Source: Basidiobolus meristosporus CBS 931.73 (lineage: Eukaryota; Fungi; Basidiobolomycota). From it: a DNA stretch of 64,000 bases. Below, one piece after another: positions 5,515 to 62,186 of the stretch (its first letter is position 1; each line of letters starts with the position of its first letter). The notes under the pieces were generated by a model that worked only from the letters and a program-made list of their open reading frames with translations, was not told the origin of the DNA and ran no database searches. The stretch covers positions 124,001 to 188,000 of the forward strand of contig MCFE01000059.1 of NCBI GenBank assembly GCA_002104905.1, in the 5' to 3' direction. The position numbers were made by a program, and so were the translations under genes.

Positions 5515-7224
5515 ATGGCTCTCACTCAAACAGAACTTCCTTTACACACTGGCCTTGCCAAACCTTCAACACTCTCCGTAATGAGGGCATTGATGGATTC
5601 ACCCGCAGCCTGGCTAGTCATGTACTTCTTCTTCAACCTCGGCCTGACCCTGTACAACAAAGCGGTGATGCAGCTATTCGACTTTGGCTTCCCCTGGACC
5701 CTCACCGGGATACACACTTTGTTCGGGGCTGTCGGCTCGTATCTCCTTTATCTATTCGGAGTGTTCAAGCCCAGGAAGCTAGGGGAGAGAGAGAGCACGG
5801 TGATGCTCGCCTTTTCAGTGCTATATACCCTCAACATTGCCATCAGCAATGTATCACTGTAAGTAGCAGTCCATGATTACTCGTGCCCATTAGTGGAGTG
5901 TAGTGTAGTGTAGTGTAGTGTAGAGGAGCATAGCTGGGGTGAGAGTGAGTGGTAGAGCGTAGCGTTGGTGACGATGAATGCCAGCGTAGCAGAGCAATAC
6001 ATGTATATATGAGCAGTACTAACCAAGGGATATTCTCCTTTTTTATGACACCTCCGCTGACGACGATCATGCAGCCATCTTGTCACAGTTCCGGTAGGTT
6101 CAAGTCCATGATACTCGCTGAATGCCAGGACTAGTGGAGTTGCTGATTCGGCTTGAGTGATGATGAGAGAAGCGAGTACTAAACGAGACCCGTTTGTTCA
6201 TTTCGATTCTAGTTTCATCAAGTAGTCAGAGCAATGACACCACTGTTCACCATTGGATTGTCAGTAGCCTTCTTCAAGATCACCTACTCAAAGATGACCT
6301 ATATCTCACTGTTGCCGGTAAGTGAATACTTTCTATGAACAGAGTATCGATGTAGGAAGAGAGAGAACAGGGGGGGAGGCTAATTTTGTGGCGAGGTGGT
6401 CTGAAGGGCCGAGCATTCTGATGGATGGGGAGAGGCGATTCTGACCACCAAGGCCACATTGAAGACAGATTAGAAGCGACTGGATTGTTCATATGGTCAT
6501 GGACTGACGAGAGACTTGTCTGGACATTTGTAGGTGATTTTTGGCGTAGCGTTTGCCACATTCGGGGACTACTACTTCACTGGAATGGGATTCTTCCTGA
6601 CGATACTCGGCACGTTGCTTGCAGCGATCAAGACGGTGGTCACCAACAAGGTACAGACGAGTGGACTGAAGTTGCATCCATTGGACCTGCTGTACCGGAT
6701 GTCGCCCTTGGCCTGTATGCAGACCATCATGTATGCCTACATGACTGGCGAGCTGGAGGCGGTGAGCATCTTTGTCCGCACCGAGATGAGCTGGCCACTG
6801 GTGATTGCACTCGCGGTGAACGGAGTGATTGCCTTTTTCTTGAACGTGGTCAGCTTCACTGCGAACAAGAAGACCTCGGCGTTGACCATGACGGTTGCAG
6901 GGAACGTGAAGCAAGTGTTGTCGATTGTGTTGGCCGTGACCATATTCAACCTTGACATCTCGGCGATGAATGGACTAGGGATCTTCTTGACACTGTTTGG
7001 AGGCTGTTGGTACACGTAAGTAGCCATGATGTGGATAGCTGGGTGTGAGAGGGCTCGAGCAGGAGAGCACCGGACCAGATGAGTGAAACGCGAAGGCTAA
7101 CTGTAATCCTGATATTTCTAGATATATCGAATACAAGGAGAAAGAACAGAAGGCATCAAATACTAACAAGATTGTCGCAAGTGAACCTCAACGTTTTTCA
7201 TCAATCCGCACTGAAAAAGTTTAG
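5515..7224 (+). CDS. Triose-phosphate/nucleotide-sugar transporter family protein, copy 2
   Basis: Exons 5515-5858, 6075-6093, 6213-6317, 6534-7015, 7122-7224. Same structure as copy 1, with diverged N- and C-termini. Confidence 0.88.
5605..7130 (+). repeat. ~1.5 kb near-identical direct repeat, copy B
   Basis: Near-identical to 550-2071. Confidence 0.95.
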
Positions 7225-8265: not shown

Positions 8266-9861
8266 CTATAGATCCATATAACGCCCATGGAACCCAAAAG
8301 GCACTACATGTTGTTGAGTGAAAGTGGCGCGAGCTATTTCGGTCAATTCCTTAGCATCTAATACCACCAAGAAACTTTTCCCTTTGTTGCCATCAAGGAT
8401 GACACTTAGCAATACTCCATCATCCTCTGCTGTTGCATTGGGACTGGGAATGAAGATGGGTTCCGAAGGAGTACACCCAGGGTGCTGCCAAACCCAGAAT
8501 CTTCCTTCGGGGCCATCCACTCCTTCCCGATTGTCCAAGTCGATCTTTAAGATCCGGTCAAACAGAGGGGTCTTGGTGTCTCTTGAATTGGATACGCCGT
8601 AGATGTACCGGTATGGCTTCGTTATCAGATGGGGACTAAATGTTGGTAATTCGATGTCCAGAGAATCTGGTGCTTTGAAGAGCAACTTGGCGGGGACTTT
8701 TTCCTCTGGATTCTGGGTGGAGGGCGAGTTCAGCTCAATTCGATACACAGACGGCAAGTATTTTGTTGATCCTGGACGGTAGTTTCGAAGTTTATCAATG
8801 TACAGCGTAGAGATTATTCCATTATCCTTGTATGCAGAAAAGTCCATTACGATATTGCCTTCAGCATCTTCCCATGAATTGAGCGAATGGAAGCAAAACA
8901 CAGGCTGGAAGGTGTACGTAGCAACATGCTCTTTCTTATTGCGGTCCACAACGTATATATGTGTCTTCGAGTTGGGATCCCAATGGTTGAAGGAGGCAAC
9001 TACATTCCGTTTCAGGAGAATGTTCAAGCCATTCATGCTATAGTAGCATGGCCATATGGCTAGGATGACATAGTTCTTGGTGACAAAAAAGCTATGAATG
9101 TAGGCGGGTGGCGCGTTGAGGGAGGCGAAGACCGTCACTTCAGGTTCAGAATCCACATCGGCAGCAGGTTTGATGCTAAAAAGATGGTAGGTCGCTTGTT
9201 TGCCAAACTCCAGGGTGAATCCAAATGTCTCGTGTGTATTGGGATCAAACTTTGTATGGGCTGGCGCTAGAGACCCACGTAGTTTCGCGTTGAGGGTGGT
9301 GTAATTGAAGATACTCACTGGCTCCAGGGTGACAGGGTCTAGTGATTGCAGAGCATTGGCGTCTGTCTTCACGACAAGATTCTGTACCGGCCCATCATTC
9401 ACATTGCTGACGCCTGGAAAGTTCAATGATACAGTGACACCAATGTTGGCCTCATCGGGCCTGCGATCTTTCGGCTGAAGCCCTGTTACCTCCTTGAAAA
9501 TGGTGAAGTACTTATCGAAGATTGTCTGACAGGGATCTTGTCCAAAGGTGATCTCATCCATTCCAAGGCCTTGTCGAAACTTCTCCTCTTTGCCTTTGGC
9601 GGTGTTCCGATTTCTGTATGCTACGTGTGAATCTCGGATTTCAAAGCGGTGGATCTGGGAGAGACCATCGAACCAGTGCTGAATGGAATACGGCTTGTCC
9701 GCCCCTGCAACAGGGATCTCATAAGTCCCGGGGCCAGCGCGATAGAGCACACCGTTCAACCAAGTGGGGATCTTGCCGGTGACCTCAAGTTCAATGGGTT
9801 CGAGGACCTCGGGGCAATTCTGAAGTCCTTGCTGATAAATGAAATCGGGCTCTGGTGCCAT
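8266..9861 (-). CDS. Carotenoid cleavage oxygenase (RPE65/CCD family; resembles fungal CarT/CAO-2/CarS-type enzymes)
   Basis: Intronless. Shows VTGKIPTWLNGVLYRAGPG, HWFDG and four Fe-ligand His (APAH, AYIHSF, CFHSLN, FGFHG), plus EPIFIP and EDDGVLLSV. Start is placed at ATG 9861 because a TATA-like gtatatatac (9931-9940) lies inside the longer ORF starting at 10023. Confidence 0.9.
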   Translation of the reverse strand: MAPEPDFIYQQGLQNCPEVLEPIELEVTGKIPTWLNGVLYRAGPGTYEIPVAGADKPYSIQHWFDGLSQIHRFEIRDSHVAYRNRNTAKGKEEKFRQGLGMDEITFGQDPCQTIFDKYFTIFKEVTGLQPKDRRPDEANIGVTVSLNFPGVSNVNDGPVQNLVVKTDANALQSLDPVTLEPVSIFNYTTLNAKLRGSLAPAHTKFDPNTHETFGFTLEFGKQATYHLFSIKPAADVDSEPEVTVFASLNAPPAYIHSFFVTKNYVILAIWPCYYSMNGLNILLKRNVVASFNHWDPNSKTHIYVVDRNKKEHVATYTFQPVFCFHSLNSWEDAEGNIVMDFSAYKDNGIISTLYIDKLRNYRPGSTKYLPSVYRIELNSPSTQNPEEKVPAKLLFKAPDSLDIELPTFSPHLITKPYRYIYGVSNSRDTKTPLFDRILKIDLDNREGVDGPEGRFWVWQHPGCTPSEPIFIPSPNATAEDDGVLLSVILDGNKGKSFLVVLDAKELTEIARATFTQQHVVPFGFHGRYMDL

Positions 9862-53654: not shown

Positions 53655-55847
53655 ATTCCTAGTACTGTTATTGGAAAAGCGCTTTGACAATCAATCGAGG
53701 TAATGTTTCCACAAAATTGCTTTAGTAGGCGGTAATATTTAAAGGATTCTATGTCTACACGGGTAGATATATGAAAATTGAAGTAGCACCCAAGTAAAAT
53801 GCAAGAATAAATAAGTTGGATTGTCAAGGAAACGCAACAAAAGCCAAGTGAATACTATTCAAAATACAACCAATATGTTTGTATTGCCCAACCTCTGACC
53901 TGATATTCATCAAATGCTTGGATTCCTATTTACTTGGATTTCCCAAGCAGATTTCTCGTTTGTATTCTCCAATAATACATCCTATTTAGTGCCTAAACGT
54001 ATTCTATTTTTTTCTCGTTTGTTTTGATAATAAAATTCTTTGCCTTATAGTTAAATTGCCTAGATCTAATTAATGAAAGGTTACCTAAACTATGCGAGTG
54101 TCACGTGCGCCTGAACTCATCAAGGGTAACCCTACCCATCATGTTAATGCTCTTATTTATTGCTAAAATTTCCAACAACAGCGTATGGTGCACTTTTTGC
54201 GAACTGGGCGTATTCGTGAACTCAGCTTCAATATAGGTCTGGAAGGGTTGTGAAAAAGTTTGAGATTCAGCGAGGTCTTTTCATTAATATACTAATGCAC
54301 ACCTCCATGACCTGGTCAGCTTGTTGTGTATTATTGACTCAAGGAGTGCATTGGTTTGGAAAGCAAGGTGCGCGATATTCAGTCGAAATGGCTGGCTAGA
54401 GAATATACAAAATTACATCTTCTTGAGCAAGGTTTCGGCATTCTTGTTTGCATATCGATAGGCTATCGATGGAAAGACGAATTGGCAGGCGAACTTGACA
54501 TCATGCAGCCGGATAACTTTTCTTTTGGAGCCTGTTATCAGGCTATACGTCTCTAAATACAGCCCTTTAGAATTGAAAAATCGTCATGCAAATAAGGAGA
54601 ATAGAAACCATTCATTATTTTCCAGAGCAAGTCGTCGCACATACATTCCAGGATACACATGGCAGGCGTAGATATCTCAATCCGTTTATGAAAACTGTTT
54701 AAAACTCTATTGAGAGTATTCAATGACCCTATTCAACTAATAACCAAACTAGCTACTTATTTACGTAAAGATATGAGGATGGAAGTATATTTCCTCCCCA
54801 TTTTCCTTATTTTTCCATAACATATGGTGGATAAGCTTGTCGTATAATGGTTCATATCCCCCTTCCTCGATAGCCTTGTAAGAGTTGAGGGTAGAGCTCC
54901 TGTAACATTTGTTGAGTTCAAGGTGCGGGAAATACAACTATTGTAGGTAAATACCCGGTTTGATATACATTTGAGAAGCATCTGTCTGGGCTAAAACGTG
55001 CCATACTTCATGTCAGTGTTTGCAAGGGCTTGAACGGATAATGTAACAAGTATTTAAGCCGGAGGGGGTGTTGAATCATCACGTTCTCTATGAAACACAT
55101 CTCACTAAGCAATAGCTAATCAACTTTACCATCATTGTCGAAGCTGCATCCCCATGATATGAGGGATTGGGGCCACAAATCAACTGCGACACTCATTACG
55201 TGTGAGAAGCCCAGGATTAACTCATATTCCAGTGATGATTGTGATTGTGGAAAGACGCCATACAACCTTCCCCTCGCTGAGTACGCAAATGTGACCAAAA
55301 CCCCACAGACCAGAATGAGTTGGATAGTATCATTCTGTCCACCTCTGATGCGTATTCTCACGCTGAATCATTGAATATATCCAAGTTCAGCTACCGATGA
55401 CATTAATGACTGTGGTGGAGGGAACACTCATCAGCAGCACCTGGATGCTACTTTGTATACGCAGAAGTGAAGCTACGAGCATGACAATGCCCCCAAATCA
55501 GATGATCCAATGTACCATTTTATAGAGGATACGTCAGCCTCCTCACTTAAATTAACATTGACATGTATTGTGGATTTTATACAGGCCTCTATTACAAATC
55601 GATGGACATGGTCGATATCCTGGCGAGTTTGCCTTCATGGATGATACGGCCTGGCCTTACCAATATCACAATCTATTATTCTCCAACAATAACTGGGGTT
55701 AAAAATAAGTCATACATCAGTGGTTGTGATTAATGAATGTTCATCATTGTAATCAATCAATCCAACGTGTCAGATATCGCTCATTCTAGTATATAAAACA
55801 GTCCACTGTTGGGGTTTGCTCATCAGCATTCCACATTCCAAATCATT

Positions 55848-56371
55848 ATGAAGGCCCAAAGCGTATACTTGTGTGTACTACTGTTGTGCATTTCCAATAC
55901 TTGCCTGGTTCAAGGTATGTTCTTAGTATCTGATTTTTTGTGCAGGAACGAAACGGTTAACCCCGTAGCTAAGCTCAATCAAGCACCTCGCAGCCTCCAG
56001 CCGAATCTCCGAGCAACAACAAAGAAATCACTAAAGTAATTGAAAGCACATCCATACAATCATCGCAAGGTGCGCAACAAACTCAAGGGAGCATGAACCA
56101 AGGAGGCCCTCAGAATCCACGGAATACAGGGAGTGGAGCCACCCCGACTGGCACGGGAGCAGGCCAAAATCAAACTATAACAAGTACCCAGTCATCCAAC
56201 AACTCGGCGACAGCAACAACACGACCACCCATTGATTATCCTACACCATCAACACATGCAACTGCCTATTTCCCAAATGTGTACAAAAACCCTAACCAGG
56301 GAAATACTCTATATAGTGCAGAATTAACGGCGATTTCTCTTATAATAGGGGTATTTCATTTTATGTGCTGA
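55848..56371 (+). CDS. Small secreted Ser/Thr/Gln-rich protein with GPI-signal-like C-terminus
   Basis: Exon 1 (signal peptide MKAQSVYLCVLLLCISNTCLVQ) is spliced at GTATGT..TAAG to a long exon AQSSTSQPPAESPS..NQGNTLYSAELTAISLIIGVFHFMC. TATAAA lies at ~55791. Confidence 0.7.
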
Positions 56372-56900
56372 ATCCTAAATCACCATGCGGACATACAATC
56401 ATTATAGCATATCCTACACAATACAACGCTGCATGTACCTAAACCGCCATTGTCAAATTGGCTAGATAATTGATTGACTAAGCAATCAATAAATCGAGGT
56501 TAGCCCTTTAATCAGTGAATACACGGTCAATAATGAATCAACTGGAATTTTCCAAGGCTTGGCTGGTGGCACCCATCATGGTACGCTTGTGCATAATGGA
56601 CATAACAATGAGCACGAACATATACCAGCATATGAGAAAACATATTTCTAGAAGAGTAGTACCAAGTATTTATTACCATTAGTATTATCCCAAACTCACA
56701 GCTTATTTCTGCTATATCTCTGCGACACTGCTGTAGCATTCCTCTGAGAGTTTACAGGTGTTTTAGGAGGCACTAAGTCCGCCATAGCTTTGAAGGGTTG
56801 AATTGTATCCTGTTAGCTCTAGCCTACCTGGACACTATTTTCCTTTTATGTATATCCTCCGACCTCCAATGAAAGTGCATACACACTAATGATTTAATCA

Positions 56901-58841
56901 ATCAGATAACCCAGCAAAAGTCAAGGTACTGCTACTCAGATATAATACCGTAATTAGCTTGACTTGTAGAATTTTTCACACAGTATGGTAGCATCTGAAA
57001 ACCTCAGACAAATGGTATATGCGCAGGGCTCAGTGCAAAAGTGTTACTCTGATTGAGAATAGGAAGTGCTCCAAGTCTAATTGATGATGAGGCCTACCTA
57101 TGATACTATGTGGTGAAGGGTTAGCTGTGCATTTATCTATGCAGACCATCTCTACGATATAGCTGGGATATAATTAAGCACATCTTTATATATCATAGAC
57201 CTATTTTGTGGAGAGTTTGTGGTATATACTACTGATTCATATCCTATCTGTCACATGGAGTCTTATCATTCATCTTGTGTACCAGAGCGAAAAATCCCCG
57301 CATCATTTTGCTTACCATTGATATGATATGATCCAAGATTACTTCGCATTTCGGTAGTGAGGAACTGCCACAAGCCGAGCCAGAATATTCAATACTTTTC
57401 TATACGACCATTTTCGTCAAAATGCCTATTCTTGCTGGAGTGAATGTCTGGAATCCCAATGAGATCAACATGGATCACTGATATCCGGTCATATTTCGGC
57501 ACTCCTGGAATGCTGAAAACCACTTCGGTGTAGCCGCCAATCTGATAAAACCTATTATAACGATACAGTTGGAATTGTAAATATCGATTTCTCACAATGT
57601 TACATCATGTGTCCTTTTGGAATTTCCAATAGAATTAAACTTCTCCTTTATAATCAGTTGATCATTTCATCATGGTTGTGCGTGATCACATCTTTTTCCA
57701 ACGAGCACAATCTATTAGTTGGTTTAACATTTTATATTAGTTGACTTTGAATAGCGTAGTAGCACCCAATTACATCGGGAAAAATATAGCGTCTTGGAAA
57801 CCATCCTGACTGGAAACCCTGGATAGGGAAATCTTTTCTGATTATGCTTTACAAAAATACCTTCCAGCCCAATCGTTTTTTTCTGTGGCAACCTTCTAAT
57901 TCATTAACACTATTGATCCCTCATTCATTAGTCTCGACTTCGTTGTTCTTTTTATAAATAGATCAGATTGAGTAAAAGAATCAAGTTTTTCACATATCAG
58001 ATCTTTCCCGAATGTTATTACAAGGGATCCATATTTATATTATTCTTTGATATATTTCTATAGAATCAACCCCGCGTAATTCCTCCATGGAAAATTCACA
58101 CCGTCAATTTATCCTAACCAACAGCTGACCAAGAATCTTGACACCAGGAAGCCTACTTCAATCAATGAAAGTTTTACAGTATATCAGTTGGGTATTGTCC
58201 ATGGGCTTAGAACGATCTATGAGTTGTGACTACAGGTATTTTTATTGACGGCTTACTATATCAATCATGAATTCATACCTTTATATCACTTCTCAGTTAT
58301 CAGATCTCAAATCACCCCATATATTAGACTCTAGAAGAAATACCCAGAGGAGATAAAAGCCTTGTATTACGGTGAACACCATTAGTTAATGCAAAGGTAT
58401 ACGAAAATATTTTCAGGTCTATTTATGGTAATTACAATGTCAAAAGTTCGCACAGATTGTAACTAATGGTGATATGGTTTATAAAGAGCTATTTTGCATT
58501 TCATGCTTCGCTAATGAAAAGTAAACTAGATGAGGCGGAGCCCTAAACCATACAATATTGAAGGCTTCTAGATCGCTTTTTTGTAATTATATCGTGAAGT
58601 CCTACAACATCAAATTTGATTGCAGTACTTATCAGATTGGATGTAAGAAAGAATATATCTGATTGGCGAGTTACTATATAACATTCAGTTACTACAATCA
58701 GATAACATCCACCTCACCATGCTATCTGATTCACATTCAGCAAAGATCTGATTAATGGAAATATTTTTATTGGATGAACATTCCGTGAATGAAGCTTGTA
58801 AAACATATTCAACGAATTATAACCTTTAGAATTTATCAGAT
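56901..58841. promoter_or_regulatory. Cluster of ATCWGATAA iron-responsive GATA-factor (SreA/Fep1/Sfu1-type) sites upstream of the heme oxygenase
   Basis: Exact matches: 56901-56909 (+), 57540-57548 (+), 58297-58305 (-), 58629-58637 (-), 58697-58705 (+), 58833-58841 (-). ATCWGATAT variants at 57994-58002 (-) and 58655-58663 (-); an ATCAGATAG variant at 58722-58730 (-). Confidence 0.75.
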
Positions 58842-59240
58842 GAACCGTGTTAGGAATTTCTCGTGTTGATGGATACAAGTAGGTTTAATCAATTTTAGTA
58901 CAGAAAGTGAGACCATACATTTCTTAAGATTTCAATTTTTCCTGTATAAGCGGAGAAGCAACACACGTTTTCAACGGATTCCTATTGTAGTACAGATTCC
59001 CTTTAATATCAATTGACTCATATTACTTGCAAATCAACCCAGTTGGAGCATCTCAATAGCAAAAAATACATATTTTTGAGTAATTCGCATTTTTGGCGCC
59101 AATAGGCTCCTTCTAGTTTGGGAGAGAAAAAGTATTTAAAGATGATGAGTTGCGACAAATGTACTTTCATTTGATAAAGCATCTCTGATCTAATCCGAAT
59201 AACCGCCCATTAACAATCAAAACCAAACTCATAATAAATC

Positions 59241-62186
59241 ATGGCTCCGAAAGAGGTTGAAGGACTGGTAAACACTTATGAAGATCCTGCTCAATGCCCC
59301 GCATTTCAAAACGGCTGTCCTTATGCAGGCCTCTCCGTTGAGCTAGCTAATGTCAAGGCAACTGAACAATGGTAAGTAAAGCTGACTACACTTTCTATTT
59401 ACGATGCTTACTAAAAGCACCGTTCCATTCTTTTGTTGATTCACATAGCCCCGCTTTCAAAGATGGTAAGGAAAATTAGCACCTCACATGAATGTCACAC
59501 AAATTAACACGAAGTTAGGCTGCCCCTTCACCAACAAAAGTCCTGAAGAGATCAAAGAATTGTTGGAATCAATCCCTAAATCCCACAAACAGTGCCCTGC
59601 TTTTACTTCTGAAGGTATTGATTATGCGACAGCCTTGAGCTAACCTCAATCATTAATGCTTTTTAAATATTAATTAGGTCAAGTGAAGCTTAACGTATGC
59701 ACCGAGGGAAGCTCGTTGTTTGAGGCTTTGAGAGAGTTGAGAACTGATCTCTTCTTACAAGAAGGTTAGTCATCATGAAGGGCTAGCGGGAATACATTTG
59801 TAAGCTTGTTAACACATAAATCTACATTAATAGATGCAGTGATCTTGGCAGAGGAATTGAAGAAGGGTACCCACTCTGTCCACAGACTCGCCGAGCGTTC
59901 GGCTTTCATCAAGTATGCATGGCCCGAATGCTTATTTTGTCTTGGCCTGGTACTAACGCTATAAATAGGCGCTATATGAAAGCCGAGATTGACAGAGAAA
60001 CCTACAAGAAGTTCTTGGTATCCCTATACTTTGTCTATTCGTAGGTGTTACCATGCCAGGAGATGAACATAGAGTGTCAATTAACATCATTTAATATAGC
60101 GCATTGGAGGAAGCGCTTCAGAATTGCGCCGGAAACCCATGCGTATCATTGGTTCATTTCCCAAAGGAATTGGAGAGAAAGGGCTCCTTGATAGCAGGTA
60201 ATTTCTAATCCTAAATCGTATTGAAAGATAGTATTAATACGGGGATCTCTAGATCTGAAATATTTTGGTGTTGAGTCATTGCAAGATCTCAAACCATCAC
60301 CTGCTGTCCAAAAGTATTGTTCCGCCATCAGTGACGCAGCACAGAGCAACCCCGCTCTATTAATTGCCCACAGCTACACCAGATATCTTGGTGATCTCTC
60401 AGGTGGCCAGATCCTATCCAAAAGAATTCAGAAGTCCTTGGCCTTGCCTGGGAACGAGGGAACTAAATTCTATAGCTTCGAACATATCAAGGATCATAAA
60501 GAGTTCAAAGAACTCTATCGTAGCAGATTGAATCAAGTTCATGCTGATAAGACTTTGAAAGGTGAGTGAGCCCCACAGAAATACGTGACCACGCTTATGC
60601 TGATCCCCTGCAATTTAGATCAAATCGTTCAAGAGGCAATTCGTTCTTTTGAATTGAACATCAATATGTTTGCTGAATTCGATCATGTGGTGACTAACCC
60701 TGTCGTAAATGGTATTCACATTTCTAATGAGCATATCGAGTTAAAATGGGCCCTAATTTGTTTCACTATAGATCAGGTTTCTCTTGCGAAGTTGATGCGA
60801 GAGGGTACACACAAGGTCCATCGCCTTGCTGAGAGCTCTCCTTTCATCAAGCAATACATGCGTGGCCATGTAACTGCCGAAGTCTACGGCCGGTTTTTGG
60901 TTTCACTGTATCATGTTTATCAGGCTTTGGAAGAGGAGCTTACACGACATGCATCTGTCGAACCGGTTGCATTAATTCATTTCCCCAACGAGTTGAATAG
61001 AACTGAGGCACTCATCAAAGATTTGCAATTCTACAACGGCTCTGATTGGGCATCCAAATTGGATGTCACTCCCGCGACCCGCCGCTATGTTGAAGGGATT
61101 CGTGATGCATCTGAGCGTAATCCCGCTCTACTTATCGCTCATAGTTATACTCGTTACTTGGGGGATTTGTCAGGTGGTCAAATCCTGGGCAAGAAGACTC
61201 AAAAATCCCTTAATTTGCCACTTGATAACACCGGTATCCAATTCTATACATTCAGTAATATTGAAGACCTGAACGCTTTCAAGAACATGTATCGCGAAAG
61301 ACTGGATATGGTTGAGTCGGACGAGAGCTTAAGAAATGCCATCATTGCAGAGTGCATTCGCTCGTTTGAATACAACATTGGAATATTTTCGGAGTTCGAT
61401 CATACCGTCAAGGAAGAGTCTGAGGAGGAAAAAGGTCTCGCCACTGCTTTGAAACAGGGTACAATGGCTGTTCACAGATTGGCCGAGAACTGTGATTTCA
61501 TAAAGCGTTACATGAAGGGTGAAGTTGATACGGAATCTTATGGGAAATTCCTTTTCTCCCTATACCATGTATATAAGACATTGGAAGAAGAACTACGTAA
61601 GAACGCGCTCAACGAACACATTTCCTTGATCCATTTCCCTGAGGAGCTTGAAAGAACTCCTGCCATCATTCAGGACTTGGAGCATTTCCATGGACCAAAC
61701 TGGAAAGCAAATAGCATCCCAAGCCCAGCAACTCAGGCCTATATGGATGCTATAAAAAAGCTTAGTGCTACAGACCCCGTTTTGTTGGTTGCACATAGCT
61801 ATACGCGCTATCTTGGAGATCTTTCAGGTGGCCAAATACTCCTCAAGAAGATCCAAAAAAGCCTGAATTTGCCAGATGACGCTGGCACCCGATTCTATAG
61901 ATTCCCAAGAGTTAACAATATGAACGACTTCAAGAATTTCTACCGAGAGAGATTGAATGCCATATCCGTAGACCAAAGAACAAAGAATGCTTTGGTTTCT
62001 GAGGCTGGCCGGGCATTTGAGTTGAATATTGGAATCTTTTCTGAGCTTGACCAAGTTCAAGAGTCAAAGAGCAAATCGAGGATGGAATTAGGAAACGTTG
62101 TTCTTGTTCTTGCCTGGATTGTCCTTATTATATCGTATCTGTACAAATTTGGTTACTTGAGCAATTTGACATCGTCTGCCTTTTAG
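59241..62186 (+). CDS. HMX1: Heme oxygenase with three tandem HO domains, N-terminal Cys-Pro repeats and C-terminal TM anchor (~798 aa)
   Basis: Exons 59241-59371, 59449-59465, 59519-59614, 59678-59764, 59834-59912, 59969-60040, 60100-60197, 60253-60561, 60619-60711, 60772-62186 sum to 2397 nt (798 aa plus stop); all introns GT-AG. Three copies each of VHRLAE, HFP.EL.R, AHSYTRYLGDLSGGQIL and FK..YR.RL. Confidence 0.93.

Follow-up and report, generated by a model that had tools for sequence, protein, structure and literature searches.

The upstream region of the heme oxygenase (HO) gene of Basidiobolus meristosporus CBS 931.73 contains a dense array of ATCWGATAA sites, six of which are exact, together with five further sites that retain the palindromic core ATCWGAT. 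It is likely that this array is a real cis-regulatory module composed of SreA-type iron-repressor sites, by which the HO gene is kept off in the presence of iron and is derepressed when iron is scarce. The sites are far too many to be explained by chance, a second Basidiobolus species retains sites in place, and the same word recurs before a subset of HO paralogs in the Mucorales. The HO gene is thus probably on under iron scarcity, and this would be a known circuit reaching into an early-diverging fungus and not a new kind of system.

The DNA analyzed was a 64-kb stretch of contig MCFE01000059.1, referred to here as the window, and positions are those of the window unless another locus is named. 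The HO gene (K493DRAFT_386863, protein P0001) is located at 59241–62186 on the plus strand, is spliced, and encodes a protein of 818 aa with three Pfam Heme_oxygenase domains. HO frees iron from heme, and this domain content fits a role for the target gene in iron acquisition or handling.

A pattern search recovered all six of the exact sites that had been reported on both strands in the original prediction. They consist of ATCAGATAA at 56901–56909 (plus strand; the most distal site, −2340 from the ATG at 59241), ATCTGATAA at 57540–57548 (plus strand, −1701, with CCA before it as CCAATCTGATAA), ATCTGATAA at 58297–58305 (minus strand, −944), ATCTGATAA at 58629–58637 (minus strand, −612, overlapping an ATTGG), ATCAGATAA at 58697–58705 (plus strand, −544), and ATCTGATAA at 58833–58841 (minus strand, −408, the most proximal site). 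The distance to the ATG, previously given as 0.4–2.3 kb, was measured at 400–2340 bp. The five additional sites with the ATCWGAT core are a core-only ATCAGAT at 57962–57968 and the variants ATCTGATAT at 57994–58002 (minus strand, within the block TATCAGATCTTTCC), ATCAGATAT at 58655–58663 (minus strand), ATCAGATAG at 58722–58730 (minus strand), and ATCTGATTA at 58746–58754 (plus strand). The three one-off variants mentioned earlier were an undercount, as eight one-mismatch matches to ATCWGATAA are present between 56993 and 59177, four of them with the ATCWGAT core (57994, 58655, 58722, and 58746).

The clustering of these sites is far above background. Seven exact copies of ATCWGATAA were found in the whole window, compared to 2.10 +/- 1.52 expected from dinucleotide-preserving shuffles of the window, and six of the seven are packed into 1.94 kb. 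The seventh copy, at 8622 on the minus strand, is inside a 585-aa minus-strand ORF, and the single other match noted by eye within a CDS is indeed the only one. The palindromic core follows the same pattern, with 11 of its 26 window occurrences falling within the 2.4 kb from 56800 to 59240. One-mismatch matches to ATCWGATAA are not enriched in the window as a whole (40 observed vs 50 expected), and the shorter GATA word HGATAR showed no enrichment beyond the composite ATCWGATAA sites. When the window and eleven further fetched loci were pooled with the HO promoters excluded, the 157.8 kb contained 7 sites, a background rate of 0.044 per kb, which fits the rough expectation of 0.03–0.1 site per 2 kb that had been offered. 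At this rate, the Poisson probability of six or more sites in 2.5 kb is ~2e-9, so that the upstream extended sites, six exact and five core, stand above background.

The original prediction would not have held if the motif were part of a repeat. The repeat families detected in the window are only 14–29 nt in length, several of them are anchored on the ATCWGATAA motif itself, and a tandem-repeat scan found no tandem repeats. A repeat origin was rejected, as each site is a short word on its own and no copy of a longer unit.

The HO promoter of a second species, Basidiobolus ranarum, was used for comparison, as the original prediction had proposed for orthologous promoters in general, and the motif proved to be conserved there. 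The B. ranarum ortholog (P0002) is 78% identical to P0001 and is located on locus L002 with its ATG at 5845. Its promoter contains 7 exact matches at six places, compared to 0.71 expected, and these are found at L002 3940, 4501/4503 (a full palindrome), 4804, 5186, 5269, and 5411. All of them are 0.43–1.9 kb before the ATG, and none was found elsewhere in the 14.5 kb of the locus. The two promoters align weakly, with 56–60% identity in ungapped columns. Of the nine B. meristosporus cores in the alignment, six (57996, 58299, 58697, 58724, 58746, and 58835) are nevertheless identical in place, while 7.1% of other 7-mers are conserved in this way; the corresponding binomial P value is ~9e-6, and this in-place conservation may be somewhat inflated if MAFFT anchored on the motifs.

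In terms of individual sites, the variant at 57994 and the exact site at 58297 have in-place matches at L002 4441 and 4804, respectively. The 58697 site lies in AATCAGATAAC, which is identical in B. ranarum (L002 5269), and the most proximal site lies in ATTTATCAGATG, which is also identical (L002 5411). The variants at 58722 and 58746 are matched in place by CTATCTGAT (L002 5299) and GATCTGATTA (L002 5322). For the cores at 57540 and 58631, a B. ranarum site is present a few alignment columns away, namely ATCAGATAA at L002 3940 and TTATCAGAT at L002 5186. The first of these pairs, within ~15 columns but misregistered by MAFFT, is probably orthologous. At the 58655 variant B. ranarum keeps only the CTGATTGGC part, the core-only site at 57962 is not conserved, and for the most distal site at 56901 no B. 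ranarum counterpart was identified. The conserved variant sites keep the ATC half, or ATCWGAT, even though the terminal AA is lost. Purifying selection on the sites is indicated by these in-place cores together with the recurrence of the word in four Mucorales genera described below.

Two features of the array count against an iron switch: a distance of up to 2.3 kb from the ATG is large for sites in a fungal promoter, and the most distal of them lacks the B. ranarum counterpart. The nearest annotated gene upstream is a minus-strand WD40 gene that ends ~5.6 kb away, leaving 5.6 kb (53655–59240) with no annotated or conserved gene and with a lower G+C content of 0.37–0.41. For intergenic DNA of a fungus, this is a long stretch. 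The distal sites (56901 and 57540) could be imagined to serve an unannotated transcript within the gap, or the cluster could be a product of chance or of repeats. The unusual length of the gap, a 92-aa low-complexity ORF at 56093–56371, and the isolated 56901 site would all suit such an explanation. The ORF, however, matched nothing in Pfam and is without a counterpart in B. ranarum, where no gene is called over at least 5.8 kb at the corresponding place. When the 107 stop-free frames of 30 aa or more in the gap were all used as tblastn queries against the B. ranarum upstream region, no conserved coding sequence was found; the short, weak matches obtained fall on noncoding conserved blocks. 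Scans of the 5.6-kb region for Rfam families and tRNAs were also negative. A hidden upstream gene was rejected on the basis of these results, and the sites probably act on the HO gene, since no conserved coding sequence, RNA family, or tRNA is present upstream. As for chance, nothing seen supports it in view of the P value given above, the conservation in two species, and the recurrence in four other genera. Taken as a whole, an explanation by a separate transcript, chance, or repeats is very improbable.

The promoter also contains other conserved elements. The original prediction placed ATTGG, the complement of CCAAT, over two of the sites, at 58636 and 58662. Both overlaps are present, a third at 57537 (CCAATCTGATAA) had been missed, and of the three only the 58662 box is kept in B. 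ranarum. This CCAAT box, GCCAATCAG at 58659–58667 on the minus strand, overlaps the 58655 variant, is identical in B. ranarum, and is a candidate site for the CCAAT-binding complex. In the Mucorales, the sites have CAATC and lack CCAAT. A CCAAT/GATA composite was rejected as a general rule, since a single box is conserved and the Mucorales sites are without CCAAT. Downstream of the proximal cluster, a TATA-like block ~290 bp from the ATG, CTGTATAAGCGGA at 58942–58954 on the plus strand, is shared without change by B. ranarum and is a candidate core promoter. Two further promoter blocks are identical between the species: the non-GATA block AGTGAGACCAT (58906–58916), and TTGACTCAT, which includes an AP-1/Gcn4-type TGACTCA (59014–59020).

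The comparison with Basidiobolus covered ten HO loci, drawn from Mucorales, Umbelopsis, and Mortierella. In the HO tree, a divergent 'B' clade of Mucorales HO is set apart from the main 'A' group. The promoters of the B-clade genes contained three to five exact sites within 1.3 kb of the ATG: four in Mucor circinelloides (−714, −655, −114, and −59), four in Backusella (−723, −126, −92, and −44), five in Cokeromyces (−1205, −1137, −545, −481, and −69), and three in Helicostylum (−646, −112, and −71). Each of two Lichtheimia HO loci has one proximal exact site, at −99 and −139. The A copy of Mucorales HO belongs to a conserved BPL-HO-DUF7719 arrangement and its promoter is very short. No exact site was found in the short promoters belonging to the A-type HO genes of Mucor and Rhizopus; a site at −920 of the A-type Mucor gene falls inside the coding sequence of the neighboring gene. 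The Mortierella and Umbelopsis HO genes have no exact site within 2.5 kb upstream. The distribution of sites among the paralogs suggests that in Mucorales the B clade is the iron-regulated copy and the A group the housekeeping copy.

When all 7-, 8-, and 9-mers were ranked by the number of the six site-bearing HO promoters that hold each of them, the top shared k-mers were only pieces of RATCTGATAAR, i.e. (A/G)ATCTGATAA(A/G). The motif was therefore recovered without being presupposed. A purine occupies position −1 in 22 of the 27 sites compared across species. In M. circinelloides, the site-bearing HO is preceded by a gene (locus L004, 1335–3539) for a 579-aa MFS transporter with TRI12/MFS_1 matches, a profile that is common among siderophore transporters. 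No sites were seen before this transporter gene within the locus.

The extended word has a well-described regulatory counterpart, as the original prediction stated. ATCWGATAA is over-represented in the SreA regulon of Aspergillus fumigatus, from which Schrettl et al. (2008) deduced it, and they noted that it also describes the sites used in vivo by Urbs1 and Fep1 (PMC2610380). In Histoplasma, every gene of the siderophore cluster is preceded by (G/A)ATC(T/A)GATAA, and Sre1 binds this word in vitro (Hwang et al. 2008; PMC2275787). The −1 purine preference observed here agrees with the Histoplasma Sre1 consensus. In Candida albicans, deletion of SFU1 results in the over-expression of iron-uptake genes, and the measured set includes the HO gene HMX1 (PMC5717023). 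In Lichtheimia corymbifera, one of two HO genes (LCor09772.1) is strongly induced by iron limitation. An in-silico SreA site has been published for the Mucor rfs promoter (PMC9226013), and a study of Rhizopus microsporus describes the GATA factors Znf4 and Znf8 as SreA homologs with DAP-seq data (PMC12638772). An SreA-like regulon in an early-diverging fungus is less new than first implied, because the Rhizopus homologs and the Mucor site were already in print. A literature search on iron regulation in Basidiobolus returned nothing.

The identity of the binding protein is a point on which a different explanation can be offered, namely that the sites are functional and are bound by another GATA factor (AreA-type, white-collar, or lineage-specific), in which case nitrogen, light, or development would control the gene in place of iron. 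The GATA core is common to GATA fingers. A regular-expression search of six-frame translations found no GATA finger in the window or the fetched loci. The Rhizopus study reports that the GATA factors all bound similar regions in DAP-seq and that the family is expanded in Mucoromycota, Mortierellomycota, and some Chytridiomycota (PMC12638772); because of the shared binding, the word alone cannot name the factor. Selection here is nevertheless on the whole composite ATCWGAT(AA) and not on HGATAR, and with the −1 purine included the extended word is identical to the Sre1/SreA consensus. A two-finger factor fits better than a single-finger AreA-type factor because the variants keep ATCWGAT without the AA and HGATAR by itself is unenriched. 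The iron regulation of HO in Lichtheimia and Candida also argues against a response of another kind.

A response to light deserves separate mention because of the gene that follows HO in both Basidiobolus species. This gene encodes an intronless GAF-HisKA-HATPase-REC hybrid histidine kinase of 561/566 aa (L001 14845–16530, 85 bases past the window end, and L002 11703–13403), and biliverdin, the product of HO, is a photoreceptor chromophore. The GAF domain is, however, generic, PAS and PHY domains are absent, and among solved GAF structures the best match is to a diguanylate cyclase. The proposal that HO feeds a neighboring phytochrome was downgraded to a weak rival for these reasons. As the fungus is rich in introns, the lack of introns in the kinase gene hints that it came from bacteria. 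Overall, it is unlikely that a GATA factor responding to a signal other than iron accounts for the array.

Our data are thus most consistent with an SreA-type iron switch, for which the following mechanism can be proposed. The copies of (A/G)ATC(A/T)GATAA, six exact and five core-variant, would represent the composite site of the two-finger iron-sensing GATA repressors (SreA, Sre1, Fep1, Urbs1, and Sfu1). If iron is sufficient, then a putative Basidiobolus SreA-type repressor, loaded with iron, would occupy the array and the HO gene would be off. When iron becomes scarce, the repressor would leave the DNA and HO would be transcribed, possibly with the help of the conserved CCAAT box and the TATA-like block downstream of the proximal cluster. 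Expression of HO would then allow the cell to free iron from heme, and the role of the enzyme would be the release of iron from heme and not housekeeping.

It may also be that the iron control is real and that the main role of the enzyme is something other than scavenging iron from external heme, such as the recycling of iron from the cell's own heme during starvation, the detoxification of heme in the animal gut, or the production of biliverdin or CO signals. Regulatory evidence indicates when a gene is on and not how its product is used. Residues 1–85 of P0001 (window 59241–59620) contain repeated QCPAF-x2-GCP(Y/F) motifs that resemble heme-regulatory CP motifs, and these N-terminal paired CPAF-x2-GCP(Y/F) motifs suggest that the protein may sense heme. 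The paired motif is conserved in the A-type Mucorales and Umbelopsis HO proteins, is degenerate in the Mucor B paralog, and is absent from the Lichtheimia ornata and Mortierella proteins. In addition, no heme receptor or importer gene was seen among the neighbors of the HO gene, and the synteny with the GAF kinase is conserved. On the other hand, the iron-repressed HO of Candida serves the use of hemoglobin iron (PMC5717023), and the separation of a site-bearing paralog from a site-free one in Mucorales fits an iron-specialized copy. The roles listed and iron scavenging are also not mutually exclusive. A main role apart from scavenging is rated as improbable.

The evidence obtained is comparative, not experimental, and it indicates that selection acts on the ATCWGATAA code of Ascomycota and Basidiomycota in the promoters of Basidiobolus and the Mucorales as well. 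This suggests that HO is an old target of the iron-repressor code. It is possible, and we propose it tentatively, that the SreA-type switch, with an unchanged 10-bp specificity and with HO among its targets, is older than the divergence of Basidiobolus, Mucoromycota, and Dikarya, and that in Basidiobolus it acts through unusually dense arrays. If this is true, and if the regulon also extends beyond classic iron genes, then the gut-associated Basidiobolus would be a natural model in which an expanded iron regulon is combined with an amplified, three-domain enzyme for the extraction of heme iron. The results also predict which Mucorales HO paralog is iron-regulated, namely the B copy, and Mucor is genetically tractable. 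They bear on the use of heme iron by the agents of mucormycosis and basidiobolomycosis, and they provide a functional hint for an odd three-domain enzyme. The step is an incremental one, as an iron-induced HO in Mucorales and the SreA homologs of Rhizopus had already been published.

Among the known systems, the Rhizopus Znf4 and Znf8 proteins (PMC12638772) provide an example of DNA-binding SreA-type factors in an early-diverging fungus, one that belongs to a different phylum-level lineage than Basidiobolus. The HO genes of Lichtheimia and the Mucorales B clade are from early-diverging fungi as well, and their promoters have one proximal site in Lichtheimia and three to five exact sites in the B clade. 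The Lichtheimia paper describes no promoter motif, and the induced LCor09772.1 may or may not be one of the two Lichtheimia loci examined here. The array is similar to the A. fumigatus SreA regulon and the Histoplasma Sre1 cluster in that the same extended word is present in several copies and on both strands. In those fungi the sites precede iron-acquisition genes, and the −1 purine preference is common to the Basidiobolus sites. In contrast to the A. fumigatus and Histoplasma promoters, the Basidiobolus array is denser and longer, with six exact and five core sites over 2.3 kb; the host is outside the Dikarya, and the target is an HO and not a siderophore gene. The HMX1 gene of C. albicans, controlled by the Sfu1/Hap43 circuit, is also an HO gene that iron starvation induces and that is over-expressed after deletion of the SreA-family repressor, although HMX1 is a single-domain enzyme while the Basidiobolus protein has three HO domains and N-terminal CP motifs.
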